Source of the DNA: Ascidiella aspersa
Lineage: Eukaryota
DNA: 64,000 nt
Reading direction: 5' to 3'
NCBI GenBank assembly: GCA_963924565.1
Contig: OZ004607.1
Coordinates: 31,496,001-31,560,000 of the forward strand
The notes beneath the pieces were generated by a model. The model did not search any database, was not told the DNA's origin, and worked only from the letters and a program-made list of their open reading frames with translations. Positions 22,497-51,621 of this stretch are shown here, in pieces (position 1 is the first letter of the stretch; each line of letters begins with the position of its first letter). A program made the position numbers and the translations under genes.

Positions 22497-23478
22497 ATGG
22501 GTAAAATTACTGACAGCGCTACATTCCTGTCTACGTTGGACGTTCGAGTCCTATGTGAGACGGACTTGCATCGCGTTCAGTCGTTTATAGCCAAGAATTA
22601 CAGCTGTCAGCATCCTTTGAGGCAAACATTCAGAGCAGAAACCGGGCGAGCAATCATAGAAGATAGGTTACGGATAGCGACAAAAATTGGAGACTGCGTT
22701 TCGCTTGGTATATTTGTCAAGGAAACAGACGAGCTGGTTTACGTTGAAATGAATTCGATTTTGAGTAAATCAAAGTCCGATTTTCCTGAAAGCAGTCCTA
22801 CTGATGCGACGAAGGAAGAAGAAGCAATGTGTACTTTCATGGCTTCCCTGGCAGGTTTGCCTTTGTAACGCACGCTGCTGCTGCTTTTTATTATTTATTG
22901 GTCGTTAATGTTTTATTGTTTGTATTTTAAATCATTTGTTAACAAGTGTAAGTTACATCCGCCATTGAGCATGAAAATGTATAGTAAACACAATAATTTT
23001 TATATTTTTTGTTTATCAAAATGGTTTTGTACATTTCATTGAACGAAATGCAAACATTTTCATGTACAACCTGTATACATGGTTGTAAAACCGTTAAAAG
23101 TCGGTTAAGTGTTTCCTTGTATTGTCTGTAGGTAATATCTTCGAAGATCTGAAGGCGAACACAATCTTTTTGACAAGCATGATAACAGTGGCTGAAAAGT
23201 ACCGCGGCCTTGGTTTGACCAATGTGTCGTTTGCAAGGCGCGAAGCCTTGGCGGCGTCAAAAAATTGCGATTTCGTGGTAGCATTACCGGTGTCAGCGTT
23301 TTCTCATCGCAGCCTGGTAAAGCAAGGCTACAGCACTTTGAGAAGGGTGAACTACTGTGATTACGTCGATCCAAGGACTGGGTTAAACCCAGATTTAAAT
23401 ATTTTACCCATACATAAATTTGCGACGTGCGTGTATAAACGTGTCAAAGCACAAGCGGAGATTTCCATTATAGAGTGA
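22497..23478 (+). CDS. Insect-type AANAT/Dat-like GNAT N-acyltransferase, copy A (234 aa, no PTS1)
   Basis: Exons 22497-22854 and 23132-23478, phase-1 intron. YSCQHPL, EKYRGLGL (acyl-CoA motif A), VSAFS, NYCDYVDP, LPIH; ends ...EISIIE. Confidence 0.88.
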
Positions 23479-24878
23479 TTCGTATATATTATAGAGTGAT
23501 TCGTATATTGTAAAATACACGTCAATTACGAAATCAGCAGCTAGTGAAACTACATGAGTAAAGCCTAAGGATACCAAAATGTCAGTAATATAATTGCAGT
23601 GAATTTGTTTTCCTAATTTATCACCAGGTAGCGCGTGTAAATCACTATTTAGACAGCGGGCCGATGCTAAATTTTGGCGGGGTCTAAATGGTAGATGTGT
23701 CCGGCGAAATCAAAACTAAAAAAGTTGAATATTTGTTGGTATTCCTATTTGTCTAAATTTAAATCTGGGACCAGGTGGTAGCATTCAACGACAAATTGCA
23801 TTAATGTTTTGAAAAGTTTTCGCAAATCTTGCTTCAACAGTTCAAAAAAATATATGTTAAAAGAAAAAGTTGCTATTTTTTCAGAAAAGTTACCATCTTT
23901 GTTGGACACGACTTGAAAAACCATATAAATCTCACTGTACCTACAGTTCAGGTTATATGTCCAATAATATCGGGGCCGATGGGTCATACTGGTACTTCGG
24001 GCATCCGCGATACACTGGAGCGACATTTCTAATGCTATACAGCACCAAAATATATTTTAAATTGTTGGTCTTTGTTAACCTTGTTAAATCATTTTTGTTT
24101 ACGATTGGAATGCAAAAAATACAGATGATGTGTGTTATTTTACTGGGCTTAATTTAATATTATAGGAAACAACTTGGCAAAAATGATACGAAGAGAGCTT
24201 TGAACTATTTATCTCTTATAATAAATGGCACAGTTTGTCCGCCGGTCGCCATGTGTTCGCCGCTCGGTCGCTGACATGTGATCTTAAAGAATTGCTGTCG
24301 GCCTACAATACATGATTCACCCATAGTTAATTTTAATCTAGTTTGTAAACTGCATTTTAATTTTAGTTCTAATCTTATCGTTTTTCTCGAATATAGACTT
24401 TGCCCAACAGAATTTTTCAGTTATCCATTTGTACCAAGTTTCATCCATGTGGTTAATATGATATGTTTCACCTAATATTTTAAAATGTGATCCAACGTTA
24501 TGCCATTAAAAATCCTAATAAATGTGTTTTCATTAAAATCCACAAAGTACTATCTTTGCGGAATTGGATTCCATGTTTTGTTTGAAAACTACTGACAAAG
24601 GCGATTGTTACAAAATAAGAGCTGAAATGACGCTAAACAAGAAACAACCAATAGAATTTCATCTTCTTGGTGAAACGAAAAAACGTGGTTTTGAAGAGGA
24701 AACTAGTATTTGTAATTTTAATCGAAAATTATGGGATTTAGACAGACAGTGATTTTGCTGTTGATGACAAGTGCTTGCAAATCAAATGCGGACAAAGGTA
24801 ATCTAGCTTATTGACTAATTTAATATGGACTACTATTTCAAAGCAGAATTTCAAATTGATGTTATTCTAGTTGTTTAG

Positions 24879-27543
24879 TTCAACGAATTTGGCGATCACT
24901 GCCAATTCCAATTCTAACCTAGTTGGTTAATTGCCTGTGTATTCTTGTTCTTTTTTATTTCCATTTTTTTATATTCGAATTCGTTCAACGGCGTTTTCTT
25001 GCTGTTCGTTACACATATTATGGTGGTTGCGGAAACTTGCCAGGGGTTAGCAACTACAAGTCGTTGCTACCAAACAGTAGCCTATCCATTTAAATTCATT
25101 ATAGTTCAAAAACTAGGAGAGTAAAAATGCCGTTATACAACATTTTTAGAAAAACCCGAATAAAAATAAAATTAGAATTAGAGCAAATTAGAATTAGCCG
25201 CATTTTGTTTAATTCTTTGAGTTATCAAATCTGGTGTAGTAGTCCATTAAAACTGCTGGCGTGTTTTAATAAGTAAATTGTTATCGTATAGAATAGATAG
25301 ATCAAAAAACGATATGAAAAATTAAAATTTTCTACACTTGAGTATGTATATTTCATTGAACAACCTAAATTGAAAACTTTTTTGCAGAACTTTCAGGCGA
25401 AAGTACAGACCCGGCGACCATATTTTGTTTTCCACCATGGCTTATGATGGTCGCGACATTTGTCTTTGCACTTTTGGTTTTATGGTCTGTCGTGATGTAA
25501 GTATGCTTTAATAACGTAACGATAAAGTCAGTGGTTGTTATAACATATTCGAAACTGGTATTTCGAGCTAATCTACGACCGTCCATCCAATATTAAATGA
25601 CTTTATTGTTTATATGACCAAAATAGAAAAACATATGCTGTATTGGACTCCAGCACCCAGTTCAAAGTAGGATTAATGCACAGTCGAAATTAAGTTTTGT
25701 TTGAAAAATACTTAAAATAGAAGAATAGCAATTTGCAAGATTTAAAATACATTCTAGAGCCAAAACAGCGGCGCCCTTACGTCTCATACCCTCTGTCTAC
25801 TCTTAACGTCATTTATATTATTGCAGTATTTTTCCCGTGAGTTTAAGTCCTATTCCGTCGTGGTTAATACTGCGTAATTGGCTTTATAATTTCATTGGTC
25901 TTTATACTACGGTTTTCATGATTCCGCTTAAGATATCCTGCCTTTGTAGGTCTTATTGTGGGTCACCGAACCTTGGGTTTTTCGCAAAATAAAATGGGTC
26001 TCATTACAACTATAAGAAGAAGGCGGTTAAGCGTTTGGCCGAAAAAAGTTGCTTGGTGTATAATTAGAGTTCACAAAAGTCATCCGTGATCACGGTAAAA
26101 AAGGTGTAATAAAAATATTTTAGGGATGTTTTATTCAAGGAAAACTCAATGTCATTGGTGAACTAGTTTATGGTTTAATTTTAGTATGGCTGTTTAACTG
26201 TCTATACGTTATGTTCATTTTAAAACAATTTACAATAAATGCGTGCGAAGGTCACGTGAACCTTGCGTTTTCGTGTTTTCGCTTTTGGATAAAGATATAT
26301 ATAGAATATATTTAAAAAAATATATATACAGGTTTTTTCAGGGAATTGCGCAAACCAAAAAAATAATTAAAAGTTGTTTTATTACTAAAACTCGATGTCC
26401 AGTCGTCTCCTAAAGCCCACATGATCAGTGTTTTACAACGATTAGTAAACATAATACCTTACATAATAATAAGTACCCCATTTCCACAAACATAATAAGT
26501 ACCCCATTTTCACTTCACCATAGTTTTTGAAAGGTGCCCAAATTAGTTTTATATCAGCTACCTTCTCATTCGACAGATACTACTACTCAGTCAGACTCAT
26601 ATGCAACAATATAGAGGCGGGCCAAAATAGAAGCGAAACCGGACCTATAAGGCAAGGGGGGCACCGGAACGTGGCAATGCGCAAGGCCGCGCGGCACCAA
26701 CGGAACCGGGAAAGTCCCCCGATTCCTCAGCGAACCATGGCCCTTCCGGGTACCTTGGCGCCGTCCGACCAGGTTCCAGTGATGCCCGTCCACACTGCGT
26801 CACAAGTGTACGATCCAGGAGAGAATGGACTTCAAAGGAGCCAAGTTCCACCCGATTTGAGATCTAAGGCCTTGGAGGTTTCTCACGTCACCGATGGCCT
26901 TGTCCTGACCAATCCCAATTCTGTAAGGCAAACCAGCTTTGGTCACTTTCAAGGAAGTTCGCGCAGAGTTAGTCCAGGACCTCACCCACTGCCAAGCTGC
27001 TACTCTAATATTCCGCCATTAACAGAAAACCTTCCCAGCAGACCATTTGCAAGCGGTTCTTTGCAAAAGCCTTTTGTCGACCGGAAAGCCAAACCAATGT
27101 ACATGACATTGCCCGTTTCTGAGTGGCCGCCGCCCTGCGGAGGAGGCAATGCAAGCTTGAAGCTAAATCCTTTGTACAGACCCTTGTCCGATTTACAGTC
27201 AGTGAAAAATAGTCCGACCTCTACTGATTCGACTTCTCCGGCCAAAGCCATTCAACTGAGACCCGATGATGAAGAGATATTGCCACGGGACCACGCGTTG
27301 GCCTAACAAAACTTTGACAAATCATATCCAAAAATTCCAATTTCAGAAAAATCGGACCCAGCCGAAGCAAATCAAGAAACATTAGAAGCAACACATTCAG
27401 TTACAGAAAAATCGGGCATAGCCAAACCAAATCGAGATACATTTAATCCAAAAAGTTCAGTTCCAGAAAAATCAGAACCAGCCAAAGCAAATCAAGATAC
27501 ATTGAATGCAAAAAATCCAAGTCCAAAAATGTCAGTCCCATGA
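24879..27543 (+). pseudogene. Orphan membrane protein gene with a Pro/Ser-rich signalling-type tail; apparently lesioned
   Basis: Exon 25388-25496 (TM ...PPWLMMVATFVFALLVLWSVV) splices in phase to 26577-27306. Related PSWLI-hydrophobic segments near 24918 (preceded by an in-frame TAA) and 25856 (frameshifted). The frame continues past TAA 27304-27306 to TGA 27543. Confidence 0.5.
27301..27540 (+). repeat. 60-bp (20-codon) degenerate tandem repeat x4
   Basis: Units start with GCC at 27301, 27361, 27421 and 27481; consensus AKANQDT..PK..V.EKS.P. Confidence 0.85.
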
Positions 27544-29995
27544 GAAAAAATCTAGAATAACTGCTAACCGAACATATGTTGTTTACGAAATTGATTAGAA
27601 TTATGTGACTTTTCTTTACTTTTTTGCCTAGATTTTTTGCTAGCTGCTATTCGGTGAATTTTTGTTTGTTGACTTACTTACATTCGGCCTTACTCTATTG
27701 TTTCGTAATTAGCTTAAAATTGCTTTTTCAATTATCTTTGGCGTGGAAAAATATCGTAAAACTGCCGAATAAACATTTTCTGTTTTTTTTCAAATTTCTT
27801 TTCAACTGCTTAAAAAGTCTCCAGCATGGAAAAAAATCGTTAAACTGCTAACGGGACATTTGCTGTTTGTGAAGTTCGTTGATGTTCTTTGTTACTCGAT
27901 TAGCTTTTTGTCAAATTAGTCAGGGAAGCGATGGCCATCACTTTTAACTTCAGGAAAATAACCACAACTCCACCACCATTTCTTATTTGGTGAATCGGTT
28001 AAATTTTTGTCTTGTTCGTTTCGTTTGTTGTTTATAGTTTTGGTTTTTCGTCCAAGTGCTGTCGTAAATGCTGCAAGCCAAACTAAAAGTTTGCCAAATG
28101 TTGAGTGTGATTTCCTATAAGGTTCTTTAATGTTCAGTGTAATTCGTTGTATTTTTTATGGTAAATAACTGAGACTGTAACTATTTTTTAGTTAAATGTC
28201 GCAAAACCAATGTTTAAAGCCCAACTGTGTGCCTGGTGTTGATTTCGTTGAAGTTGGTGTTATTCGTTTTGTTTTCTGCCTTGTGTTTCGTTTAGTTGTT
28301 GCTGTAAAAAGCCAAGACGAGAAAGTCGTATAACAAAATTTGCATTTAGTCGGGTCGGAGGTAATTGAACGTATTTTATGCAGATACGTGTTTTAAGGTA
28401 GATTATTACTATAATATGTGAAAATAATTTGTATAAAAGTTTTTGCGTATTCGTTGGTTTGATTACAAATTACCGGAAAATTTGTTACAAATTACTAGAA
28501 AATTGTTGTTTGTTAAAAGTGTAAATAGCCTTTTTTCGTTTTATTTCTGTATAAGTTATTCTGTTTGACTGACACTGGAGCAATTTTGTAAGCCCTCGAG
28601 TAGCGAAAACATACTGTAAAAAATTAAGGGACAAAAACGAAGAATTCTACTCAAAACTGTAGTTTTCTGGCTAGAAAGCTTAAACCCTCAGAAAAAAAAA
28701 ACGTATTACTCTTCAAAGTTCCGTCTTATTCGTTTTGCTATCATGTTTAAGTTCGCTTTTTTTTGCTTTTGGTCATTACCCATTAAATTCAACTTTAGAT
28801 TTTTAATGTCCCATATGTCTTACCATGATCCGGAGCAGCCAGATAATTACGTTTCTATTTTTGTTCTTATTTCGTTAATTCATGTTCTTTTTACTGTCAT
28901 TTTTCCCAATTTAAATGGCAGTACGCTGAACACATTGTTATTGGTTAGTTACGATTGTAGTTGGAATTCTTTGTTAGCTTGACTTGCAATTTCTTTTTTC
29001 TTTCTACCTTCATTCTTGCTGTTCATTCGTTTTTGTGAATAAACAAACTGAACATTATTTTTCCGTCGTCCGAACACAATGTAGCTTACATGGTTTATTA
29101 TTTAAATTTTTATTAAAAAAAACAATTTTTAAAAGGGGTTACCGTGTATAGCAGGAGTGGGCAATTACATTTTACAAGGGGGGTGCATGAGAATTAAAAA
29201 ATGTTTTGGAGGACCAGGTACAAAATTGAATCTAAAATACCATAATATAAAGTGTGTATGTTTTTTAATAAAAAAGTAAATAGCCTTTAAAACTTAAAGT
29301 TTAAAAACCTCAGTGAAACATAGGATCAGACATTTTGAGAAGTATATGTTTCGCCTAGACTAGACTGACATCGTCGGTTCCTATAAGGTTTATTCATTTT
29401 CAACATCAAATGTTCTATATTTGTGTATCTACCAGTGGTTAGCTTTTCCTTAAAAAAAACAACGCGCACCGCCTGCTGTAGACAGTTTTTTACGAGTCGT
29501 TGTTTGATAGGTTTATACCAGGGGTCGGCAACCTACGGCCCGCGGGCTGGATCCGGCCCACCGATGTAATTCATCCTGCCCGCCGTCTCTTTGACAAATT
29601 AGAGTCCATTTGACATACTTTTTGACTATTTTAACTACGTAAGTTCGAAAAATTTTCATACGTCCGGTTTGTTTACGTTTTTATGCTGTCTTTTCAACCA
29701 AATCAGCGCTTGTTTATTGTTGCGCCGTGCAAGGCTACCAAGTGCGTCTCGGAAAAATTGAAAACGTATTCAAAAATATTGCACATGTATTTTTTTTTTC
29801 ATTTTCCATTTTCGGCAATAACCTTTCAAGAAATCTAAAAGAAATGCCAATATACCCCCAAAAAAATCGCGCTCGCTTCGCTCGCCAACAGCGTCCTCAC
29901 TTAAATAGCTTAACCACACTTAGATAGATTAACTTTATATGTTATCGCGTTTTCCTCAAAACAGTCTTAATACACTTTTCATTAATAGTATGGAT

Positions 29996-31060: not shown

Positions 31061-31649
31061 GTATGGATTATGACGTGTGAACTCGAATTTTAAACCAAAC
31101 AAACGCTTTTTTGCGCTTTGCGCTTTGCGCTTTACTGCCTGTTTAAACGTAGTTAAAAACGTCTGAAAATGCAAAAAATAATCCGAGGCCCGCCTGATTC
31201 ACAGCTGTTCTAACATTTTAATAACACAATTCTTAGTTTCTAAATTCAGTTTTGTTTTAGCAATATATTCAAGATGTTTAATTTATTAAAGTATTTTCTA
31301 AACACTTTTATCTGTCGTTGGATTTATTATTTAAAACAACGTGATTACAAAAGACAATATGTTAAAGATTACATTAGGAAAAAAGGTAAACAGAATCCCT
31401 CTATCTAAAACCCAGGATAAAAATAATTGAAAGTTATACCCGTTTTATTTATGGGTGGCCATGTTCCCTTGAAGATTATGTGACTTATTTATATTTAACA
31501 CTAGACGATATACAGAAGTCTTGAAAACAATAAACCCATTTACACAGCAGAATGACTTTTTGAATATAAGATTAACAATTAGTGACAATTGGCTGGCAAT
31601 ATTTGAACATTTGAAGTTTTTATTAGAAAAAAAATAATAGAATAAAATG

Positions 31650-33458
31650 TTACAGTTTGCTTGAAAGAGACCTGATTTGCTCCACTCGTTTGTACATCAC
31701 TGCCGCACTGGTATGTATAGGCGATAAGTTCAAGTCTGGCTTTAATCCCGTCTTGGGATCAACATAATCGGCGTAGTTTATTCTCCTTAAAGTTTTAAAA
31801 CCCCGCTTTGCAGACATTTTTTGCGAAAATTTCGACACTGCCAAGGTTGCTGAATACTCGCAGCCTTTTGAAGCCGCAAGTTGATCGCGTAGAGGAATTA
31901 TCATGGAAAACAAACTTAAACCCCTGTAGTTTTCAGCCACAGCGCCCATGCTCAACCAAAGTATCTTTTCCGTGTTTAAATCCTTGAATATGTCGCCTGC
32001 AAAAAAACAGATTCAATTTTTTTCTAAGTTAGAGTAATGGTTTACCTACGTGTGCAAAAAATTTTACATCCGGTTTGTTTACGTTTAGACGTTGTGTTTT
32101 TACCTAGCTCAGCGCTTCTTTACCATTGCGCCGTGGAAGGCTGCCAAGTGCGTCGCGGACAAACGAAAAACGTAATAAAAAATATTAGAGATACATTTTT
32201 TAACATATTTTTGTTTTCGGAAAAATAAAATTTAAAAATTTAAAAGAAATTCCGGTATAAGAAATTTAAAAGAAATACCGGTATAAGAAATTTAAAAGAA
32301 ATGCCGGTAAACAAAATAAATTCGTTCCCTGCCTTAAAAAGGGTAACAAAAACTGAACTAGATTAATGAAAGACACACACTTCATTGTTGAGTTGCTGCT
32401 ACTAACAAAATGTAGCGAGCATTGGCGTATGGTTGTTTCTCGACTCGCTCCTCTATGAGCCTGCTTAGCTCAGTTGGTAGGATGCCGGTCTCGGTATGAC
32501 GGAAGGTCGTGAGTGCCTCACAGCAGGCTAGTTTTTTCTGGGCCACCCCTGTACTATTAATCGACGATTCTGCGATGGCTTTTCGGTGTATTGAACTAGT
32601 TTAACTATTAAACTTATCGCGTTTCTTTAAAGTAGTTTTATTACACTTTTTTATTGGTAGTATGGATGACGACGTGTGGACTCGAATTTTAAACCAAACA
32701 AACGCTTATACCCGATATTTTGGAGCAAAAGTACTGCGATCTAACCCAATATCGAATGACGTCATTACTATACTTTAAACAGGTAAAAATTGAAACGGTA
32801 TGAAGTACTTAGTTCGGGCTGTAAGGCCAAAATTTAGAGAGTTACGACGTTTAGTTGTCTGCAGTCACAGCTAACTTAATTTTTTTTTAATATACCTTTC
32901 AAAATAGCAATCATCGGGTTAGATCATAAATACCAGCAGAAATGCATATATCAATTTTGTATCTGATCGGCACAGATACCATCCCAGTGCCGGAGAAAAT
33001 ATAAAGGTTAACTGAAGTTAATTGGCCAGCAATTGAAGGCTAGTCATAAATAATTTTCTTAGTGTCACCCGGATATGTCTTAGCATGTTTTTGTGTAACC
33101 CACCTTCAATAAATTCCACGAAATCTACCATGACCTTCACCTTTTCGCTTAAAAACCCGATATCAGGCTCCTTTCCGTGGTTCGTCTTTGTGGCGATCGA
33201 GTTCATTTGAACAGCAACAAGTTCATTCGTTCCTTTGATGAAAACGCCCAACGAAACACCATCGTTGACCTTTGCACGAATTCGCTTTCGGTCAACAGCA
33301 ACCGCCTGATCGTTGTTAGTCCCGAAAACATCCCTCAGCGGATGCTGGTTGCTGTAGTTTTCGGCCAAAAAATCCGACACTCGATCGGAATCTTGTTCAG
33401 TGATAATTCGGACCTCGAGACCAGAAATAATCTTCGCTCGTTCGTCTTTTTTGTTCAT
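31650..33458 (-). CDS. Insect-type AANAT/Dat-like GNAT, copy B (233 aa, PTS1 -SKL)
   Basis: Exons 33458-33104 and 31996-31650; YSNQHPL, ENYRGL, AVSKFS, DYVDPKTGLKPDL.LSPIH, ends SLSSKL. Confidence 0.92.
32459..32529 (+). pseudogene. tRNA-derived sequence (elongator tRNA-Met-like pseudo-tRNA or SINE head) in the copy B intron
   Basis: Acceptor stem GCCTGCT/AGCAGGC, A-box TAGCTCAGTTGG, GAAGGTCGTGAG..CCTCAC T-arm lacking TTCGA, abnormal anticodon arm, downstream T-run. Confidence 0.7.
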
Positions 33459-33849
33459 GGTTTTAATTTGCTAAGCTTAACAGTTCCGTACAAACAATAA
33501 GAATTAAAATTGCTATAAAGTGCCCCAAAAATCAGTATTTTTGGATTTCAATTAAGCAAGGTAAGGTAAACTGTGACGCAAACTAATGACCTCAACTATA
33601 CAGCAAACTTTAAATGAGATTAAGTAAATTTAACAATGATAGTTTTATTCCTCACCTATATACCAATCTATTTGATATCACTATGGATTCTTCTAAGATG
33701 CAATTCATCAAGTTAATTTCTGTTTTTGGTAAAATTTAAAAAACACGCCTTGTTACAAAAAAAAAACACGCCTTGTTACAAAAAATGAAAAGGAATGATA
33801 TAAGGCTCGCCACATGACCATGGATTACAAAGGGAATTTTAAGATCAAT

Positions 33850-36538: not shown

Positions 36539-37349
36539 TTAAAGTCTACTTGAAGTGGAATTTGCAATTCCGACACGTTTGTACACCACTGCGGCCCCAG
36601 TGTGGATCTGGGACAGTTTCAAAACAGGCTTCAATCCCGTTTTCGGGTTGACAAAATCGCTGTAGTCTATCTGCCGTAAGGTAGTGAAACCGAGCTTTGC
36701 CGAGATGCGTTGTGCGAAATAGGAAACTGGTAAGCCTGCCTGACATTTGCAGCCCTTGTATGCGGCAAGCTGTTCGCGAAGCGCGCCCATCTTATAGGCA
36801 AGGCCCAGGCCCATATAGTCCTTATTCACTGCAGCCATGCTCAACCAAAGTATCCTTTCGGCTTGAAGGTCTTCTAATATGCCTTCTGCAAACAAAGGTA
36901 ACAGTTTTCCAGTCCATAGCGGTCCAACATGGTTAACCAGCCATGAAGAAAGGTTAAGTTTTAATTTTCCTTACCTTTAATATACTTGCAAAACTCCATT
37001 ACATCCTGTTCTTTATCATTTAAGACGCCGTAGTCGGGCTCTTTGCCATGGTTTGACTTTGTTGTCACCGAGTGCACTTCGGCGTAAATCAATTCGTTCG
37101 ATTCTTTGACGAAAATGCCCAACGAAGCGCCTTCACCGAATTTTGTTCGAATGCGCAAATCGTCAAATGCAATTGCACGGTCCAGTTTGACATCGAAAAT
37201 GTCCCACATCGGTTGCTGTTTGCTGTAGTTTTCAGCGAAAAATTTCAGCACCACGTCCAATGTCCTTCACGAAGAATTCGAACTTCCAAACCAGAAAGTA
37301 TGTCGGTAACGCCGTTTTTCACCAGAGCTTGCCACTGTTGAGTTGACAT
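36539..37349 (-). pseudogene. AANAT-like GNAT copy C with a 1-bp frameshift near 37261 (ends -SRL)
   Basis: The ATG 37349 frame (MSTQQW..DILSGLEVRILRE) shifts to LDVVLKFFAENYSKQQPM. Exon 1 ends at 36975 and exon 2 is 36885-36539; otherwise intact. Could be an assembly error. Confidence 0.8.
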
Positions 37350-39731
37350 GTCACTACAAATAGACAAGTACCAACAGTTTGGGGGAATTTTTAATGAAAG
37401 AACGGTGTCAAAAATCATTGTTTTGCTACAATTTATGTGAGACGTCAGTTGCGAAAGATAAACAAAGTCGCGAAAAATAGCACATGCAATACAAATTACA
37501 AATGAGCCATTACAAATCTGTCACTACAACAAATTGTTTTTTTCATGCAAATGTTTTTTACATGTAATTAAGTCTCTTTATTTAACAAACGTAGCGGATT
37601 ACTTCCCAAGTAAATAATGTATCGTGCAATTTTTTTTTAATTTCGTAACTGTATGTAAAATTACCTGGACTGGCAAAGGGTGCGGCAGGAAAACCTACCA
37701 TATTTCAAACTAGGAAAAAGAGACAAAATGTATAAGCAATTAAATCATTTATTGTCTCATCTCAAAGTCAAAAGGGCACCATTTAATGTTTTTATGCTCT
37801 AAAGATTACATCCTGTAAGTTGCGCCAAAGGTATTCGCCAGTCCAAGCCATTTTACATACAGATACGAAATTTAAAAAAAATTGAACAATACATTATTTA
37901 CTTATAAAACTTAAAACATGAAACCCTAATGGTGTATAATGTAACTTGTTATGCAGGCTGGTAAAGTTGGTCACTTCATCTTTAATTCTGGTTGTCGTAG
38001 GCTACAGCAATTAAAGCAACAACGTAAATCAAAAACCGTATTAGCTTGGCCAAAAGTCAAGTTGTCCAGTAAATTTAAGTTTAGTCCGCTCAAAAATTTA
38101 CAGTTAAACTTAAAACAACTCGGAACCCACTCCAGCCAAATTCCCCCACCACGACCCAACAGCTAAGTATTCTATCCATCAACCTAACAATCTTGTAGGA
38201 TATGGCCTTGATAAATATAGTGCAGGGATGGCGAACCACTAACCCACCACAGATTTTCAGTGACCCGACACTTGTCTCTCTGGAAATACCGAAATGCTAT
38301 CAATGATTTTCAGGAAAGGATAAATGTAAAAAAAACAATTAACTGTTCAAATCAGGGCAGCCTAATCTGTGGGCCGTGCAAAAGTGTTTTAGGGGTGACG
38401 AGTATAGGCCTACATTAACGGCACTTCAACAAATGCGTACAAAAAAGCAGACAACTGAAAGAATTTTGTTAATCGCTCTAAACCGTAAAGGGTGGCACAA
38501 GGAAGGAAAATTAAGACCACTAGGAACTATTTTGCTGGACTGCGAACGGGTTGTTTTACCGAGTCCGTATCCCCGACTAAAATGTATTATTCAACATATC
38601 CAAAGTCGGATAAGAAAATTGTTGTACTGTTTACCTGTAAACCAGCAGTTAATCAGATATTTTAAAACCAAACATTATATGTGGAGTACAACGCAAGGTA
38701 AAGGCTACAGAACATGCTTCGATAAGGCAGAGCCTAAATATAAATTTAACCGGCTGCTCGAAAAACACTTCATGACAGCCTATTCTAAACCCACTCAACC
38801 TACTGAATAAACTGCTTCAACATTTTAAAACTGCTTTCAACATTTTTCAAAACGATTTTCCAGATTGCAGTTTTTGGCGTACTTTAGTTATATCTGCAAA
38901 AAACGCATAACTTTGTCTTTGAATACAGCCTACTACATAGCATTTAAGAAAGCGTTGTTAGTACCTCAAAACAAAAGCCCTTTTTTTTTAGGGTGGTAAA
39001 TTATAAAACCAATTGGTTTATTGCATTCTTCGGCAGTTTACTGAAAATCATCTCTGTAATTTTCCATGCGTTTCGGTATGAAAATTATTCCACTTCCATG
39101 CGTTTTTTGATTGCGTTTAGAAACAGTATAAAAAATAAAAAAGTTTACCTTTGCGTTCAAAAACTTTGTTGTCTTTTCTCTATGTTTTAAGCTGTTCTGT
39201 TATTTGGTGATGTTACTGTCGTTTCGCGACTGTATAATCCGTAGGCCTAGTTTTATTCAAAAGCCAACACGACTAACGTATGTCATGTCAGACACGTTTT
39301 TGAAGAATTCATTAATTATGCCTTTTCCGCTCTTACTAGTTCGGTTAACGGAGATGCTGGTCGGGCTGCAGAGTGTGCAGATTTTACTGCTATTAACGAT
39401 ACGACATATCAAGCACTTGATTAAATAAAAAACTACAGTGCAACAGGAAAGCTGTGTATATACTAAAGTTCAGAAATACATCGCTAGATGAATTAACGTT
39501 CTTATACGCTACAATTTAAAAGAGATAAAACTTTGTCCGATGTTAGTGAGTCAAAATTGCCAGAAAAAAAATATTGAAACAATGTAAATTGCACCGTTAT
39601 GGCCTCGTTGGGCTTACGGTGTCTTTATTTTAAGTCCTAGCGATACTAACTTAGGTTTCTAAATATCCAGCTAAAAGCGTTATTAACGTAACTATTTCAC
39701 ATTTTTACTTCCAGGTAAAGCAGCTGCATTT

Positions 39732-40230
39732 ATGAGCAAAAAGGCGATCGTGTTGAAATTCGTTCTGGTCTGAAGGTACGAGTAAGATTAAGAACGGGTG
39801 TTGAATTTTTTGAATAAAACTTACTGCAACCAGCATTCACTGAGGGAAATCTTCGAAGTTAATTGATTCAGAGAGTGGGCCAGGCAAAAATTTAATTTTG
39901 CGAATAAAATGATTAATAACAACGTATTTTTATGCTTGCAGGAGACATCTGCCAAGATCGGAAAACAGAAGAGATGCTTTGAATAAGCCTGGGCACTGTT
40001 GCTGAAAAAACTACAGGCAATTAAACCGGGCCTTGCTCGTAGATCCACTACGCAACCAGCTTGCCGTATATAAAAGCTGGTTTAATGATTTGAGGGAGAT
40101 TAAGTACAGTGATTAAACGTTGACCCGAAAACGGGTTTAAAACCAGACTGATTTATTTCACCTATACATCAGTGCTTTGATCTTGTACACACGAGTCGGA
40201 CCACCGAAAGTTCTTTCAAGCAAACTCTGA
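39732..40230 (+). pseudogene. Decayed AANAT-like GNAT copy D
   Basis: Recognisable SGL.VR, TYCNQHSLREIF, ttgcag|GAGACATC acceptor, W->TGA in the LW.S motif, VDPKTGLKPD and terminal AGC AAA CTC TGA (SKL*). Large deletion in exon 1 and frameshifts. Confidence 0.88.
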
Positions 40231-40454
40231 CTCTCGTCCGTAAGAATAGATCGTTTTAAAACATGGAATTTACTTTTTAATATTATTGATATCTCACGAA
40301 AAACACTATGGTAAATTTAAATGGAACAAAACCGAAACAGTTATCGCTTTTGTAGTTGAAGTGGACAGAAAACATTCGGATCTCTCCCTGCGCGCTATGA
40401 CCCCATAAACTCGTTAAAAGGCGCCAATATCTATAAATGAAGAGTTGGACACAC

Positions 40455-41140
40455 CTTCTTTACGAAATTATAAAGCGATTTTGCTGACCCGAAACCTGGT
40501 TTGAAGCAGGGAGTAGAACCTTTTGACTTTTCTGGTTTAGGTTCGATTCGGGTTCCAGGATTTTTTCGGAATCCGGTTTAGTTCCCGTTTCGGTTTCGAG
40601 CAATTTAAAAGTTCCGGTTCAGCTCTGGTTCGACAGTCGTTATTTCAAAACCGGTTCATAAAGTTCCGGTTCGGATACAATATAAGTTGCGTTAAATCTA
40701 AAAATATGTAAATCTTTGAATTGTAAGTCATTTAATCAAAGTTACGTGACGTAATAAAAAGACAACACCTCATAATTCAAACATACAAAAAATAAAAAAT
40801 CCACGTTTTATTTATTATTTTCATATTTTTTTTTAAATCGAACATGGCATAATTGACTTTGTAAAATACAAGTTGTGACGTCATGCTTGAGTGAACCTCT
40901 TTCATGTACAGGTTCAGGTTCGGTTAAGGTTCAAGTTTTTTCAAATTATTCGGTTCAGTTACGGCTCCTTAAAATCTTACAAAAAACAGGTTCGGAAGAA
41001 ACGACCCCAAACCGGTTCATAAAGTTCCGGTTCGGTTCCGGTTCGACACCCTGGTTTGAAGTCCTATATTATTTGGTAAATTATGCATCTCGTTACTCGC
41101 GCGTCGGCCTTACAAAGAGTCGGGCACCAAAACCCATTTT
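40455..41140 (+). pseudogene. Exon-2 relic of a further AANAT-like copy (E), split by a MITE
   Basis: gattttgctgacccgaaacctggtttgaag (D.ADPKPGLK) before the MITE; acaaagagtcgggcaccaaa after it resembles YKRVG. Confidence 0.6.
40507..41053. mobile_element. hAT MITE (CAGGGAGTAGAACC...GGTTCGACACCCTG)
   Basis: 8-bp TSD GTTTGAAG on both sides; GGTTC subterminal repeats. Confidence 0.92.
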
Positions 41141-42379: not shown

Positions 42380-43663
42380 ATGGACAAAACAGAAAAACGT
42401 GCAAGGATTCTTTCTGGTCTGGAGGTCCGAAAAATCACGGAAGAAGATTCAGAACGGGTGTTGCAGTTTTTAGCTGCAAATTACAGCAAACAGCACCCGC
42501 TGAGAGATATATTCGACGTTAGCACAGATCGGGCGATTGCATACGACCGACAGCGAATTCTGGCAAAGGTCAACGATGGATTATCGTTCGGTGTTTACGT
42601 CAAAAAAACCAACGAGCTTGTTGGTGTGGCAATGAGTTCGGTGGCTACAAAGACGAACCACGGAAAAGAGCCTGAATTCAGTGGCCTAAACAAAAAGGAG
42701 CAGGCCATGGTAGATTTTGTCGAATTTATTGAAGGTAAGGGTAAAATATGAAAATCTATAGTCAAGCAACCGTATCCAAGTGGTATATGGCTATAGGTTT
42801 TAGGACATTAGTTTTACGAAACATTTACTATACCTATTTGAGTGGTTTTGGTTTGAATGTTAGGGCAAGCATTAAATAGGTTAATTTAATCTATAAACAC
42901 ATCAAAATCGTTGTCAATTTTTTCTAATTTTATGTATAATTTTATAGATCTTTATCAGATCTATTTCTCTAAAGCGGGGACTCTTGCACTTTTTCGAACG
43001 CTGTCCCCACAAAATTCGGCATGAAAATTGGCAAAGATGGCGTCACAAACAGATTAAGTTGAAACCTGCTGTTTAGGGTCAAACTTGTGTACAAATTTAA
43101 AACTGAGATCGAGCCGTATTATATTTTCATTAATCTTTTGAAAACATCAGTCTATTCAAATTATACACTTAAGTTATAATTAGGCCTTCACGAACGCCCA
43201 AAATTAGTCCACGTGTAGGCTACGCCCAAGGCGTCCACGGATCCTAGTTTAAAAGTCTAAATTTACACACGAACAATAGCTACATGGACAGCTATTAAAA
43301 CTGATTTTTTTCGCAGGAGACATATTCGAGGATCTCAAGACAGAAAAGATACTTTGGTTAAGCATGGGAGCTGTGGCTAAAAACTACAGGGGCTTAAATC
43401 TGGCAGCCTTAGTGGATCCTATTCGTGAGAGACTTGCCGCTGCTGAAGGTTGCGAATATTTAGCAAGCTTGGCGGTATCCAACTTTTCACAGCGCAACTC
43501 AGCAAAGCAAGGCTTCAAAATTTTGAGGGAGATAAACTACAGCGACTACGTTAACCCCAAAACGGGTTTAAAGCCAGATTTAAAGTTGTCCCCTATACAT
43601 ACTCGTGCGGCAGTTTTGTACAAACGAGTGGAAGTACCAAAGTCTCTTTCGAGCAAATTATGA
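42380..43663 (+). CDS. Insect-type AANAT/Dat-like GNAT, copy F (233 aa, PTS1 -SKL)
   Basis: Exons 42380-42734 and 43317-43663; same phase-1 intron; ends SLSSKL. Confidence 0.92.
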
Positions 43664-46067
43664 TATTCTACTCCAAAAACTGGTTTCGTTTTGAGATGTA
43701 TAACACTTAAAGAGTTGTTAAAAATGTTTCCCGTTTAAGCTAGAGAAAATAAGTTTTGTTGTCCATCGCCTGGTAACATGCGACAAAATAAAAATTTTTG
43801 CCCAAATGAAATTTTCCTATCAATAAATTTGCCCAAATGAAATTTTCCTATCAATATTCTGTTATCGATTCATAAATTTACGTTCGAGTTGCAATGTTTT
43901 CGTATGAACTTTGATTTATGTATTTAATTACTGATACTATTATTTGTTCGTTTGCTTATATGTTTTAGTTGCTACGAAAGCTTAAATAAATATGAAGCAC
44001 GAAATATTTCGCATGAAGCTCGAAAATACATTTGGTGTCAAATTAAAGATAATCTTTAAAAAAATGTATAAGTTTACAACGAGAAGATCGGCGAGTGTTC
44101 CTTGCTGCAGCAAATGCCTGGAGTACTTGATGAGAAAGCAGTATCTCAGGAAGGTGCGATAAACAACTCCTTGCTTGAATTCCGAGCGCTGGTCTTGAGG
44201 TGCCTATATAAACTATTTGGCCGGGTCACTCTTACGCTTGCACATAACCGTGTGACATGGTTGATGGAAATCTAAGTTGAGTACCATGCCACCCTCTCCA
44301 CAAACTGTGTTTTTGCCAAGTTTAACAGCAAAACTGTGTAACAAAAAATATGTTTTTTAAGACATTTTTTCGTGCACAAAAGAGACTGCTAAGCGAAGGG
44401 TGGTCCAAACTTTTATCCGTAATCTTCAACTCAACTTACGACAAGGTGTTAAAATTTTAAGATTTTGTTGTTTAAGCTGTGCGTAAAACTATCGTATAAA
44501 CTGTTTACGTTTTCGTGGCAATCGTACAGGCTCGACTGTGCGTGGTCCACGAACAATACAATAATAATATTGCGGCCCCAGAATTGCATGGACAACCCTG
44601 ATTTAGATGAACAACTTATCGTGGTGCTTACAGAGCTAAGCACGTTTAAAAGTACCGTAGGCCTAACACAACTAAGAGGATTTATGGATACGTGCCCTGT
44701 ATTTAGCAAGTAACGCCACATTACAAGACTTCCGGAAAATCTCACAATCGTGCCATTACACGAAAACCCCATGACGATTGACCAGGCAACTGAGTCAGGT
44801 AGAGTACAAAAAGGCTGCAGGGCATGTACAATTACTGACCTGTTACCGCGTGGCAAAAATCGGACGCTTTTACTGCTGTTAGTTTACAAGTCGACTTCAG
44901 TAAAATAGGTTGAATTTTACTGTAGGCTACTGCAAATTATCTATTGGGTTTCAAATATGCAGAGAGATACAGAACTAAAAGCAAACTTTCCAAGCAACAA
45001 AATTGATGCAAAAAGTTATGCTTCGTTTTAATGTAAACAAGTCGAACTTTATTTATGTGTTTACACTTAATTACTATGGCATTGAAAATATACAAAAAAC
45101 TTAAACTCTGGTTTTCAAAATACAACGGATTAACCCTGGTAACTTCATAGATGTGTAGTTCAATCATCTCCTGTCGACATTAACATTTGATCATATTTGT
45201 GCATGAGGGAAACAGTGAGAGGTATCATGTTTACAAAAAAGCAACATTTGTCTGGTTTTCTGTAGCCTGCTAGATTTTTCTGTGATTACATTTTGAATTG
45301 TGACTTCATCGTGAAACATTGCTTTGCAACACGCAATTCGGTCTCTGAATATTATAAACACCTACAGTAGTTTGGCACATGCCAGTAAAATCAGGTTTAT
45401 ATACCTTCTATGTATGTATGGTCAGCCAATGCTGAAATCTTAATACCTAATGGTACTTTTCGAACCCAAAATTATTAGATATTATTTATTTATCAGTCGT
45501 CAAAGGTATACGCAACATTGTGTAAATTCCAGTCTATACTTCAGTATCTGTGAAGCGATTTACCCTTAGCGATTTACAAAAATCAAAGAAGCGATTTACA
45601 AGATCAATGCAGCGATTTACAAAATCAATTCTTAGTCCAAACAGATTTTTCGCAGACGCTAAAATTACGAAATTTTAATTTTTGTTGAGATTTTGATTTC
45701 AAACTAATGTTTCGTTCGCTAATAAAAAATAGTCAAAATACATGTACAGACTGAAATGCAAATTGTAATAACATACACGAGCACAAACTTGATGCTCAAA
45801 AATATGGTATTATATTACCAAAATTGTGAATAAAAGTGAAAAAACATTTTAACGATTTTTAGATGATTAAAACTCTTCCTGGTCATAAGAACTGATTACT
45901 TGACATCTTAAGGTTTCCCAAACCCAATATTCACGTTTTTTTCTAATTATTTGTATATAGGTTGTGGAGCCTTTTGTACTGAACAAACTTCGCCTTCTGG
46001 ATATCACCGTCTGTGGTTTAATTTAGGTTGAACTAACTTTAGCTGATATCATTTGGCAACCTTCAGT

Positions 46068-47052
46068 ATGGTCAAAACAGACAAACGTGCAAGGATTATT
46101 TCTGATCTGGAAGTTCGAGTAATCACAGAGGCTGAAACAGACCGCGTGTTGCAATTTTTGGCTAAAAACTACAGCAAGCAGCATCCTCTGAGGGATATTT
46201 TCGACACCAACAACGATCGTGTTGTGGCAGTTGATCAACAGCGTATTCGGTCAAAGGTCAACGATGGCGTTTCCTTGGGTCTTTTCGTCAAAAAAACAAA
46301 CGAACTTGTGGGCGTCGAAATGAACTCGGTGTTAACAAAGACGAATCACGAGGCAGAGCCCGAACTCAGCGACTTGAACGAGAAAGAACAAATCATGATG
46401 GATTTCATCAACTTTATCGAAGGTAAAACATTTAATTACACTTTTACAGTCTCCAAACCATCTTTGTTATAATCAGAAAAGTTAATTTAATATGTTAGTT
46501 TTTTAGCGCGAGCTAACTGTTTTTGATCTTTACGTTTTGTGAATCCCAAAAGAAAGTGTTCTAAAAATAAAATGGTCTATAAAAATGCAATTTTTGGAAC
46601 CCAATTTAGCCGCAAGGCTAAACAATATTTTCAAACTAAAACGCTCATCTTTACAATTAGCGACTGAAACAACAAGGAAACCCTAACATACTTTTATGTT
46701 TACAGGAGACATATTGAAAGACCTGAACGCCAACAAAATACTTTGGATGAGCATGGGTGCTATAGCTGAAAACTATCGGGGATTAAATCTCGCCGATATG
46801 GTGGATCCTTTTCGTGAGCAACTTGCGGTTTCCAAAGGCTGCGACTATTTTGCAAGCTTGGCTTCATCGTACTACTCGATCAACAACTCGAAAAAGCAAG
46901 GTTTCACCATTTTAAGGAAGATAAACTACAGCGATTACGTTGACCCGAAAACGGGTTTGAAGCCAGATTTAAAATTGTCACCTGTTCACACTTGTGCCGC
47001 AGTGGTGTACAAACGAGTCGGAACAGCAACACCTCTTTTAAGCAAGCTGTGA
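46068..47052 (+). CDS. Insect-type AANAT/Dat-like GNAT, copy G (233 aa, PTS1 -SKL)
   Basis: Exons 46068-46422 and 46706-47052; ends LLSKL. Confidence 0.92.
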
Positions 47053-48935
47053 ATTTTCTGAAATTTTTTCCTAGATTGTTTTGAAATGTAAGGTTGAATT
47101 TGTGTTATTTTTGTTTATGACAATACGTGAAGGCCTAATAGTCAACAAATTGATGTAAAACGTGTATTGTGGTACTATTTTCAGTTTGACAAAACAGTTC
47201 TATGAGCTATACGGCTTTGTAAGCACTGATAAATATACTTTCGTTACTTAGACACCATGACGGGTTAAACCTTCTATCAGGTACATGATAGCGACTTGAT
47301 AAACAGTCAAAATTTTCGGCGCCGGTGAACAAAGGTGATATACTTTGCAACGTACATCGGTATCCACAATTAATCGAGTTAAAGTAAAATTAAAAACATA
47401 AAAACATATTTCACAACAAATACTTAATAAAGATTTAACAATATCCGGATTATCTTCGAGGTATGATTTATTTTGCTTATACTTAAAACAATACCTCAGT
47501 ATTTCCAGTAAAGATTGTAATAAAACTAATTACGAACATGTGTGGTTTTATAAAGTTATTTGATTTCTATATAGTTATACGAATACCTTTCTTAAAAAAA
47601 CATTTAAATCACCGTTAAGAAAAATGGACCTAGGCCTAAAGCCCTAAACAATAACGAGAAGACTTAATGATTCTGTTATTATTAAAGTTTCTTAAAACAT
47701 ACAAGATGTCGTAGATTTCAAGTTATTACTAAAGATTCGTCGGTGTACCGTTTATCATTAGGGATTCATCTCTTAGTTATAACAAAAAGTAAAAAAAAAT
47801 CTTGGCCAGCTTTATATGCATATTAATACAACGTATAATAGCCACTAACTGGCTTCTAGAAACAGCCTGGACATTTAACTTACTATGTTAGTCTGTGGCA
47901 TTAAATTCATAATTACCACATTTGGTATATTTGCATTACCGTACAAATCACATTCATACAAACAAGTTACCTCTTTGTGCAAAGCTAATCGCAACTGTTT
48001 GAACAAGGGCTTGGTTAGAAAAGAGATTTAGGTCTAGGATATATGCTTATTTGTTCGGGAGCCATGAATGGTTTAGAAATAGCCACGTCAAGATATCAAT
48101 AACCTCAAGAAAATTCCTGTTCCCGGTTAAACTTGTGCGCAAATGTTTAACTTAAATTCTGTTCGAAAGCATACAAGAATGTTTGGGCAAAACGTTCGCG
48201 CGAAGCCCAAAAATAATTTCGTTTGTTTGGTTTAGATTGAAAAACCTTTAAGTAAGAAGAGGACTTGTTACAACACAAAAATTTGTAAGAAGCGCCAAAA
48301 AGCACTTGTGCTAAAAACGATTCACCAGAAATGAGGAAAATAATCTATAAATCCAGAAATGATTCGCGTTTGATGTGCTTAATAGTTTGAGGGACCATAT
48401 GCCCTCGTGATCCGCATAGATCCAACCTGTCTGTGACTAAGATTGATACATTAAACGTTTCCTTCCGCAAAAAAAAACATAAACAAACGAATGACTTATA
48501 AGATCGTGCTTTTACACAGCGTTTTATAGTGTTTTGCCAGGCAAGCAGAACATGCTACTTTACTTGCAGATTGTTCAGTAATAGTTACTAAATGAACCGA
48601 TTTCTAACCAAAGTAAGCAAAACAAAGGTGAACGAATATGCGTTCAGCTGACTATAGTTAGCCCGTTATTAGGCATTGACTAGCAATTAAAGGATAATGT
48701 ATGTGAAGAAACGTCTTTAAGCAAAGATGAGTTTTAACAAAATAAGTCACAACTCACAACAGTTGCGAAAAAACTTTGATCTCGCTCGATTATAACTATA
48801 GTATTCTTGCTAGAACGTTCAACGCTATATAGTAGGTACGGTAATCGCCGTCAAAAGAAAAGCAGGTTGGGTGAAGGGTGTTATCTCTACGTACCTTTTG
48901 ATACCTTTTGACACTCCCTTTACTTTACTTTAGCA

Positions 48936-49686
48936 CAGTGTTTCTCAACCTTTTTTACTTGGGGGCGCACCTAGAGACATTTGAAAACCTGGCGGCGCAC
49001 CTTGCGAGCGAAGCGAGCGCAAAATTTTTGAGGTGTACCGGTATTCGTTTTAATTTGGTGTCAATTTTTATTATATAGGCTTTATAATTGCAAATCTTTA
49101 AAGGATCTTCAGCCTTGACCAAAATTGGAACAACATCAACTTCGGAACAAAATACAGTTAGGAATAAGGCGTAAATAGGACTAATACCTAATAGTCGTAA
49201 TAATGACAAAATCGGAATCCGACCTAAATGGCAAAAATAAGGCCTATACCACCTTTTACCTAACCCTAAACCCCACCCATAACTATCACTAACTTCCCTG
49301 ATAATTTCAACCCTAACCCAATTGAAGCCAAAACAGGGGCGAAAAATCCGAGGCCAAAATAGCGGCGCCGAAATGGCGACAACAAACGGCCAATGCCAGA
49401 CAAATGCCAGACATTCCATACCCTTTCCCTACAGTTTTAACGTTATTTTGTCTATTAAACTCTTATTCAGATTAATTTGGGACTTATTTGGACATGTTTA
49501 GGCCTTATCTAGACTATTTTACATTTTATTCTATCGTGATTACTGCGAGTTTGGCGTTATTATGTCGGTGGTCTTAATACTATGGTATTATAGATTATCT
49601 AATTGAGATATTGCTACTTTGTAGGTCTTATTACGTTTTCTAGTTGGAAGTACTGTGAAATCGATCAGCTAAGCTCAATGTGAAAG

Positions 49687-49721
<35 letters not shown>

Positions 49722-49797
49722 AAACATATTATTTTTTCTTTTTTTTCCCGCGGCGCACCTTGTAGCCTTCCACGGCGCACACGGTTGAGAAGCGCTG
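48936..49797. mobile_element. hAT MITE (CAGTGTTTCTCAACC...GGTTGAGAAGCGCTG)
   Basis: TSD CTTTAGCA on both sides; contains a (TA)n tract and an internal cctaacc-rich segment. Confidence 0.9.
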
Positions 49798-50399
49798 CTT
49801 TAGCACGTCACATTCTCGAGTTGGGTTTTTTCTCTTTTTTGAGTCGAGAACGTTCAGCAGAACTTTGGGGTATGCGGGGATTACCTAAGCTGTATTCTCC
49901 AGAAAACAACAAAGTCAAAGAGTTGTAAAACAACACAAAAAGTATAGCCATACATATTTAGCAGTGTTGTAAAAAAGTTATTCAAAAATGACCACAGCAT
50001 TTTTAAACAATTTCCAAGTTAAGTCCAAGTCAAGCCATTTCTATACCAAGTCAATTCCAAGTTAAGTCATGGGCATCAAACATAAATGTAGAGCTATAAT
50101 AATTAGCAAATTTATTTAATTAATTGTAACTTTGTCGCATAGTAAACATCAAAAACGAAGCAAATAGCAAGCAACTTTTTTCACGATAAAAAAATAAAAG
50201 GTTAATTTACCTATCATTTACCAAAAATTAAGTTAAGTCAAGTATTTTTTGGCTGTCCGCCTAGTTTGTGGACGATTATGTAAGATTGCATTTTATGTCA
50301 AGAGTTGCATAAACATCTGCCCTGATGCTAACCATATGTTTTATTTCATGGAAAAAAATAATTTAAACAAGGTAAATTGTAAGCATAGCATTCACAGTT

Positions 50400-51621
50400 A
50401 TGGCAAAAAAGGAGGATCGTGCAAAGATTCTTTCTGGCCTCGAGCTTCGAGTCATCACGGAGGAAGATTCAGATCGGGTGTTGGATTTTTTGGTAAAAAA
50501 TTACAGCAATCAGCATCCGCTTAGAGAGATATTCGGCGTCACAATAGCTCGAGGGATTGAATTTGACCGACAGCGATTTCGGGCAAAGGTCAAAGACGGT
50601 GTTTCCTTGAGCGTCTATGTCAAAGCAACGAACGAACTTATTGGCGTCGAAATGAGCTCGGTGGCCACAAAGACGAATCATGGAAAAGAGCCTGAATTCG
50701 ACTGTAATGAGAAGGAGCAAGTCATGATAGACTTTTGCGATTTTATAGAAGGTTGGCCTTTAAAATATTTAAGTTTCAGTGATTAGGGTTTTGCAATTAA
50801 AATAAGTGTAAAATAACTAAAATGATCCGGATGCATTTTACATTCTATAATAAATTAACTTTATGAACAAGCCCTAGTGGATTTTGTCAAGTTCATCGGA
50901 GGTCAGAGAAAATGCATTGATATTCAGTCTCAAAAATAAAATATTCTCCAATTTCCTTTAGTCACTAATAGCTGTCGTTCTGTAAAATTCCTAAGCATTG
51001 ACAAAAGTCAAACTTAAAAAAGTGCATTGCTGACTTACATGTAAAATTAGATTATTATTAAAATCTAAAATAAGTTTTATTTGCCGCATTTCAGAGGAAA
51101 ACTTTTAGTAGGAATATTAAGTGGTCTTGCGATATTACAAGTGTTACAACGATAAAGTTAACCGGTTTTGTGTGACACAATTGCTGTTTCTTCAAATACC
51201 GTTTTATATATCGTTCGTAAAACAAGCACAATTTTACTTCTTCCAATAAAAATACAACTGTTTTTTTCTTGCAGGAGACATCTTCCATGATCTAAAGACA
51301 GACAAGATACTTTGGTCGAGCATGGCCACTGTGACTGAAAAGTACAGGGGTTTGAATCTGTCCTCTCTTGCAGATTCTACTCGTGAGAAGTTTGCCGCAA
51401 CTAATGGTTGCGAGTATCATGCAACTTTGGCGGTGTCGAACTTTTCGCAGCGCAAATTAACAAGGGCAGGCTATACGACTCTGAGGGAGATAAACTACAG
51501 CGATTACGTTGACCCCAAAACAGGTTTGAAGCCGGATTTGAAGTTGTCCCCTATCCACACTCTTGCGGCGGTTATGTACAAGCCAGTTGGGGCAACAGAG
51601 TCGATTTCAGGCAAACTGTAA
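50400..51621 (+). CDS. Insect-type AANAT/Dat-like GNAT, copy H (232 aa, ends -GKL)
   Basis: Exons 50400-50751 and 51275-51621; ends ISGKL. Confidence 0.92.

Follow-up and report, generated by a model that had tools for sequence, protein, structure and literature searches.

In a 64,000-nucleotide stretch of the genome of the ascidian Ascidiella aspersa (contig C1, positions 31496001-31560000, hereafter the window) we found six two-exon genes and two degraded remnants of a single acyltransferase family, and past the window end the same array continues to a full complement of 11 genes over about 70 kb, in tandem and inverted arrangement. Our reading is that this array encodes amine N-acyltransferases of the insect arylalkylamine N-acetyltransferase type (iAANAT), and that the members ending in SKL or SRL are most likely peroxisomal; we give this reading as a whole a probability of about 0.6. 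It draws on the gene structures, on profile and structure comparisons that lead to the insect enzymes, on the residues at the active-site positions, and on a C-terminal tripeptide that appears to have been kept by selection.

Copies in the window were located by tblastn with the exons of one copy as query and then by hidden Markov model (HMM) scans of open frames, which yielded copies A, F, G and H on the plus strand, B and C on the minus strand, the relic D and the scrap E (Table 1), with copy-versus-copy matches at E values of 1e-27 to 1e-56, much too strong to be due to chance. When the junctions were read, all six two-exon copies showed a phase-1 intron that splits a Gly codon after its first base (donor G/GT, acceptor CAG/G., the slash marking the splice point), with exon 1 ending in Glu, Lys or Ala before the split codon (...E/K/A G/GT) and exon 2 measuring 347 nt including the stop. 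The predicted spliced proteins have 231-234 residues. The first-pass annotation had described eight related loci, a single shared phase-1 intron and a 347-nt second exon, and all of this holds, scrap E being a marginal match (E = 0.012). It had also counted six full-length copies in a cluster of about 29 kb. There are indeed six two-exon copies, but copy C carries a frameshift in exon 1, between ...EVRILREGH and DVVLKFF..., and because of this lesion and its degraded motifs (QQPM, YMGLG and a Ser to Ala replacement) it is probably a pseudogene. The copies of the cluster are likewise real, but the array does not stop at position 51621: the minus strand carries five more two-exon copies (I, J, K, H' and G') at C1:31567328-31587956, which end in SKL, SKL, SKL, GKL and SKL, respectively. 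Reading frame, splice sites and start codon are intact in 10 of the 11 array copies. F, G and H have a tandem acceptor, CAGGAG, of the NAGNAG type at exon 2 (43308-43318, 46697-46707 and 51266-51276), the first AG of which gives the 347-nt exon, and the tandem recurs in I, J, K, H' and G'. Because of this acceptor a one-codon-shorter splice variant of F, G and H is possible; the second AG, if used, would remove the Gly of the conserved G-D-I-F element.

The family was identified with three profiles, A1 from the six window exon 2s, A2 from exon 1, and A3 from a 58-sequence full-length alignment of intronless paralogues and database relatives. Against the PDB, the top matches of A1 were insect enzymes only, namely Aedes aaNAT2 (4fd5, 4.5e-10), Drosophila Dat (2.7e-5) and the Tribolium enzyme (5.9e-5). 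A3 matched aaNAT2 from end to end at 6.8e-27 (profile positions 10-224, chain residues 6-222), followed by the Tribolium enzyme at 8e-23 and Dat at 4e-15. Next came aaNAT7, aaNAT5b/SpmNAT, polyamine N-acetyltransferase (NAT) and AgmNAT; a Chlorella-virus polyamine acetyltransferase was reached at 2e-8 and ordinary GNATs only from 1e-3. No structure of vertebrate AANAT (serotonin N-acetyltransferase) was matched by A3 at E <= 0.01, and a vertebrate-type AANAT identity was rejected for that reason. Pfam gave nothing useful on single exons, two database relatives (P0001 and P0008) pass PF00583, and the nearest ESM Atlas clusters are arthropod proteins named 'aralkylamine N-acetyltransferase'. The fold was predicted for the nearest paralogue without an intron, L013:1471-2196:-, an SKL-ending protein whose identity with the window copies is about 50% in the exon-2 part and about 35% in the exon-1 part; its AlphaFold2 (AF2) model has a predicted local distance difference test score (pLDDT) of 93.3. 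With this model as query, Foldseek ranks 1-21 are all occupied by iAANAT-family structures, with target-normalised template-modelling (TM) scores of 0.72-0.87, about 0.85. From the exon-wise profiles and the clear homology to the modelled paralogue we assign the window genes to the insect-type AANAT-like GNAT family (iAANAT/AANATL). This is the assignment first proposed, and the structural comparison with Dat that had been suggested as a check, run here on the paralogue, leads to the same family.

The x-P-L element at the base position, the YRG start of motif A, a Ser at the position of Dat Ser186, and the C-terminal Y.DY and P.H elements are shared with the insect AANATs, as the Dat-like layout first described would have it, but the catalytic Glu of Dat is replaced by His. 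In the alignments of A3 with PDB chains, the Dat Glu47 column (D-E-P-L, with N in the E47N mutant chain) holds His (Q-H-P-L) in all intact array copies, and in a census the majority of the genome's copies had the same His. All intact copies have Ser (..S-x-F/Y-S..) where Dat has Ser186, and only the broken copy C has Ala there. Every intact copy also retains the Arg and first Gly (YRG) of motif A (R/Q-x-x-G-x-G/A). At the fourth position, however, only A and the probable pseudogene C still have Gly; Asn takes its place in F, G, H, G' and H', while B, I and J have Ser and K has Arg, so the Gly of the 'YRGLG' first annotated for the family stands for A and C but not for the SKL copies, which have N, S or R. 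We read this as a variant rather than a dead active site, with a His base and a modified pyrophosphate loop, because the ratio of nonsynonymous to synonymous substitution (dN/dS), from counts pooled across exons with the sequences left unjoined, is 0.12-0.33 in all pairs, and because only the frameshifted copy C loses Arg, His and Ser.

The case for a peroxisomal location starts from the C-termini. SKL or SRL ends 8 of the 11 array genes (B, F, G, C, I, J, K and G'), in agreement with the canonical peroxisomal targeting signal 1 (PTS1) pattern [SAC]-[KRH]-[LM]; within the window, the frames bear out the endings first listed (SKL in B, F, G and relic D, SRL in C, GKL in H), with IIE in A. In copies B to K identity is 64-100% over the final three residues, against 5-50% at positions -10 to -4, a linker of seven residues, and the codons for S, K and L vary synonymously between copies (AGC/AGT, AAA/AAG, CTG/TTA/CTT). 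Pairwise dS is 0.16-1.4, SKL being kept over a dS of about 1. Together with the low dN/dS, the conservation of the tripeptide relative to its linker suggests that the signal has been selected, which supports the PTS1 reading of the first-pass annotation. C-termini were read in the 46 fetched copies of the at least 90 family matches in this genome: a canonical PTS1 is present in 14 of the 46 (30%), compared with 14 of 2466 (0.6%) other open reading frames (ORFs) in the same DNA, and chance SKL endings were rejected on this comparison. Of about 45 cluster representatives from outside this genome, 8 have endings of the PTS1 type (SKL, AKL, ARL, SHL), among them named proteins of Ciona and Phallusia. 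In the model of L013 the last two 10-residue blocks have pLDDT values of 76 and 56, and because of this low confidence its SKL tail is probably exposed and flexible. The genome also has matches above cut-off to the import-machinery domains Pex3 (PF04882) and Pex14_N (PF04695). Taking together the tripeptide conservation, the synonymous codon changes, the enrichment over other ORFs, the Ciona and Phallusia endings, the probably flexible tail of the model and Pex3/Pex14, a functional PTS1 is the most economical reading of these sequences, and we hold its chances at about two in three.

The array is one part of a much larger family. With the exon-2 profile, at least 90 matches were found in the whole 309-Mb assembly, mostly intronless. 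In a tree of the exon-2 region all 46 genome copies fall into one group with three database proteins (support of 91 in the Shimodaira-Hasegawa-like approximate likelihood ratio test, SH-aLRT, where a star is given from 95), and the intron-bearing copies, that is the C1 array plus two genes on C8, form a well-supported clade (99*). The tree pairs G with G' and H with H'. On this tree the PTS1 state needs at least 4 changes, even when only well-supported branches are trusted. The cluster first described is real, but it makes up a single arm of this family of at least 90 matches, and a majority of the members fetched have no PTS1. Given the spliceosomal introns and the position in a 41-Mb contig among animal genes, we rejected contamination and a recent transfer artefact. 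Other clusters consist mostly of single-exon frames of 225-245 residues. Two of them are found on C6 at 26.06-26.11 Mb and 27.57-27.67 Mb (C6:26058001-26113000 and C6:27568001-27669429, loci L014-L039); here one clade of three ends in SKL, adjacent copies end in SKF, GKL, HNL, HKL or unrelated residues, and several copies carry stops.

In the insect enzymes the N-terminal half, to which exon 1 corresponds, forms the amine pocket. Each array gene is predicted to give rise to a soluble single-domain protein of about 233 residues of the insect-type arylalkylamine/polyamine N-acetyltransferase branch, with exon 1 supplying that half and exon 2 supplying the acyl-CoA-binding core (beta4-alpha3 with motif A, motif B and the last strands) and a flexible tail of about 10 residues. 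The enzymes would move an acyl group from acyl-CoA to a primary amine, with the His of QHPL acting as general base in place of Dat Glu47 and with the conserved Ser at the Dat Ser186 position. Since SKL or SRL closes 8 of the 11 genes, the folded enzymes concerned would most likely be taken into the peroxisome matrix by PEX5, and copy A, which has no signal, would remain cytosolic. The array represents one intron-bearing clade of an ascidian expansion in which PTS1 was gained or lost at least four times. We hypothesise, tentatively and at somewhat less than even odds, that some of the amine N-acylation of ascidians has been relocated to peroxisomes. Repeated gain and loss of SKL would have divided a His-base branch of the iAANATs between the cytosol and this organelle, and the peroxisomal members would turn acyl-CoAs from beta-oxidation into N-acyl amines or acetylpolyamines. 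Tunic tanning and pyridoacridine side chains as destinations of such products are guesses that no result here supports.

Several observations weigh against an active, peroxisomal iAANAT array. The exon-1 profile A2 has no PDB match at E <= 10 and none in Pfam, and aligns only within the full-length profile; the modelled fold is that of the paralogue L013 rather than of a window gene, the window exons having been handled apart and unjoined. Catalysis may be altered or lost in the SKL copies, since their motif-A Gly is replaced and the Glu base is not conserved. Within the array, A ends in IIE, with no PTS1, and H and H' end in the non-canonical GKL. A C-terminal SKL does not guarantee import and also fits the class I PDZ-ligand pattern. 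Finally, a representative library of 1.8 billion proteins contains none more than 50% identical to the array copies.

These points can be arranged into other explanations. Some of them suit ordinary cytosolic iAANAT-like acetyltransferases whose SKL is not used for import, being masked, in poor context or serving a PDZ-type role. The absence of a canonical PTS1 from 32 of the 46 fetched family members, its repeated gain and loss, the three array members A, H and H' that lack it, and the solved insect enzymes shown, which stop at the last strand with no tail, are all compatible with such a view; yet it would leave unexplained why SKL has been retained over a dS of about 1 through synonymous codon changes while the linker varied freely, why relatives in Ciona and Phallusia have the same ending on a tail predicted to be unstructured, and why PTS1 is enriched at 30% against 0.6%, and we regard it as unlikely. 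The enzymes could instead be peroxisomal but directed at polyamines (spermidine, spermine, agmatine) rather than arylalkylamines, so that N-acetylpolyamines would be formed beside acetylpolyamine oxidase and back-converted in one compartment. Animal N1-acetylpolyamine oxidase is peroxisomal, and the iAANAT branch includes solved polyamine, spermine and agmatine NATs (5k9n, 5yag/4fd4 and 7ciu), all strong matches here. Nothing in the present data separates the amine classes, however, and an expansion to at least 90 matches suggests many substrates rather than one housekeeping step; we regard the polyamine reading as distinctly unlikely.

That the SKL-clade proteins are catalytically dead or repurposed GNAT folds, for example binders of acyl-CoA or amines, is an improbable reading of the replaced motif-A Gly (N, S or R) and of the Glu47 to His change. 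All intact copies keep the motif-A Arg, YRG and the Ser at the Ser186 position, the dN/dS values are those of proteins under constraint, and the only clearly decaying copy, C, is the one that loses Arg, His and Ser. Moreover, His can serve as a general base, as the histidines of vertebrate AANAT do, and Asn often tolerates Gly-like backbone angles. Very improbable in our view is an array made up mostly of birth-and-death debris with few or no copies expressed: copy C is frameshifted, relics D and E lie within the array, several family matches elsewhere carry stops, and no transcript-derived protein of the clade was found in the 1.8-billion-protein library, but 10 of the 11 copies have kept frame, splice sites and start despite a dS of about 1, with dN/dS well below 1.

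Compared with known systems, the proposed peroxisomal iAANAT-type enzymes are closest to the insect AANAT and AANAT-like proteins (Dat/AANAT1; Aedes aaNAT2, aaNAT5b/SpmNAT and aaNAT7; AgmNAT and polyamine NAT; Tribolium AANAT), which have the same GNAT sub-fold in about 215-240 residues. Enzymes of the iAANAT type are known as cytosolic enzymes of insects with roles in neurotransmitter inactivation, cuticle tanning and polyamine acetylation. The ascidian proteins differ from them in having His for the Glu47 general base, in the missing second motif-A Gly of the SKL clade, in an extra tail of about 10 residues that ends in SKL, and in belonging to a deuterostome host with a much larger family. 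Vertebrate BAAT and ACNAT1/2 and fungal SidF would work alike, as PTS1-targeted enzymes that N-acylate from the peroxisomal acyl-CoA pool; BAAT and ACNAT have a thioesterase/esterase-type fold rather than a GNAT fold, SidF belongs to a different GNAT branch, and no homology is claimed or seen. The vertebrate and non-vertebrate AANATs ('timezyme') belong, like the array proteins, to the GNAT superfamily and acetylate arylalkylamines, but are a different family.

Every named relative of the family is an ascidian protein, from Phallusia, Ciona or Styela, in keeping with the tunicate origin that had been surmised from the sequence. Phallusia mammillata CAB3265803.1 (P0004) and CAB3262859.1 both end in SKL; Ciona intestinalis XP_078481902.1, which also ends in SKL, matches the window exon 2, as do Ciona intestinalis XP_078495813.1 and a Ciona savignyi 'N-acetyltransferase domain-containing protein'; and an uncharacterised protein of Styela clava is a further relative. 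In nr and UniRef, CAB3265803.1 bears the name 'ribosomal protein S6 kinase-related protein'; this is apparently an annotation error, since Pfam shows no kinase domain in the protein and its alignment is that of an iAANAT-like GNAT. Two other database proteins, P0023 (1352 aa) and P0034 (931 aa), gave 10 and 5 separate matches to the exon-2 query and are probably gene predictions that fuse tandem family members of another genome. Since SKL-ending relatives occur in Ciona and Phallusia, the PTS1 trait is ascidian-wide, and the 'lineage-specific' character first attributed to it falls away. The novelty first claimed has also to be narrowed, because two iaaNATs of Ciona intestinalis and four of Saccoglossus had already been reported by Hiragaki et al. 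2015, who described their occurrence in deuterostomes as unexpected (PMC4394704). These are the same family, present in tunicates; relative to the two Ciona genes of that paper, in which the word peroxisome occurs 0 times, the family here is expanded, clustered and partly PTS1-bearing. In the full texts searched, which were those outside subscription journals, we found no description of a peroxisomal iAANAT-type enzyme or of this ascidian expansion, and both the PTS1-bearing subfamily and the extent of the expansion appear to be undescribed.

Judged from these sequences, the iAANAT-type family of ascidians is greatly expanded, has His at the base position and includes a sizeable subset with a conserved PTS1; so far its presence in tunicates has been mentioned a single time, as a curiosity. 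Should the SKL copies prove to be peroxisomal, a chordate GNAT family of amine N-acyltransferases would operate inside the organelle that makes short and medium acyl-CoAs, which would provide a concrete route to N-acyl amines or acetylpolyamines in a chordate and a compartment and metabolic link undescribed for any iAANAT-type enzyme. It would also constitute a natural experiment on the sorting of a large enzyme family between compartments through the gain and loss of a three-residue signal. The Glu to His change at the general-base position offers, in addition, a ready-made test of the proposed iAANAT mechanism.

Table 1. Copies and remnants of the iAANAT-type family in the window (positions counted from the first letter of the window; slash, splice point)
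Feature	Position	Strand	Remarks
Copy A exon 1 (ATG to donor G/GT)	22497..22854	+	most divergent copy; QHPL kept
Copy A exon 2 (347 nt incl. stop)	23132..23478	+	motif A YRGLGL; end ...SIIE, no PTS1
Copy B exon 1	33104..33458	-	
Copy B exon 2 (347 nt)	31650..31996	-	end SSKL
Copy C exon 1	36975..37349	-	frameshift near 37262 leading to in-frame TGA; QHPL changed to QQPM; probable pseudogene
Copy C exon 2	36539..36885	-	end SSRL; YMGLG (motif-A Arg to Met); Dat Ser186 position is Ala
Relic D	39728..40230	+	exon-1 and exon-2 remnants adjoin; several stops, internal deletion; end ...VLSSKL then stop
Scrap E, weak exon-2 remnant (..SDFADPKPGLK..)	40363..40506	+	E = 0.012, marginal
Copy F exon 1	42380..42734	+	
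Copy F exon 2	43317..43663	+	end SSKL; motif A YRGLNL
Copy G exon 1	46068..46422	+	
Copy G exon 2	46706..47052	+	end LSKL
Copy H exon 1	50400..50751	+	
Copy H exon 2	51275..51621	+	end SGKL, non-canonical; one base from SKL (AGC to GGC)
Block with G and H	46014..51971	.	inverted duplicate (78-88% identity) about 35 kb on, C1:31582394-31587974, with H' and G'

About 300 nt 3' of the stop of copy H, inside the inverted duplicate, the plus strand holds a short frame, RVMAPKSIISKL (51924-51959), that resembles the C-terminal tail of the family with SKL; the match is not significant (E 8.6), and the frame may be a remnant of an older exon-2 end. Elsewhere in the window, a 30-nt minisatellite at 261-773, whose minus-strand frames contain about seven head-to-tail copies of the 10-residue unit VSYGFLWFPM, is probably non-coding repeat DNA. 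A 509-residue open frame at 6286-7815 on the plus strand, a large exon or a single-exon gene, encodes three thrombospondin type-1 repeats (Pfam TSP_1, 2.8e-25) preceded by a Gly/Pro/Tyr-rich GGQGYPT repeat. On the minus strand, 9191-10738 is an uninterrupted 515-residue frame of an FGGY-family carbohydrate kinase (FGGY_N 4e-46, FGGY_C 2.5e-28), an intronless gene that could be a retrogene or a glycerol-kinase-5-like gene.

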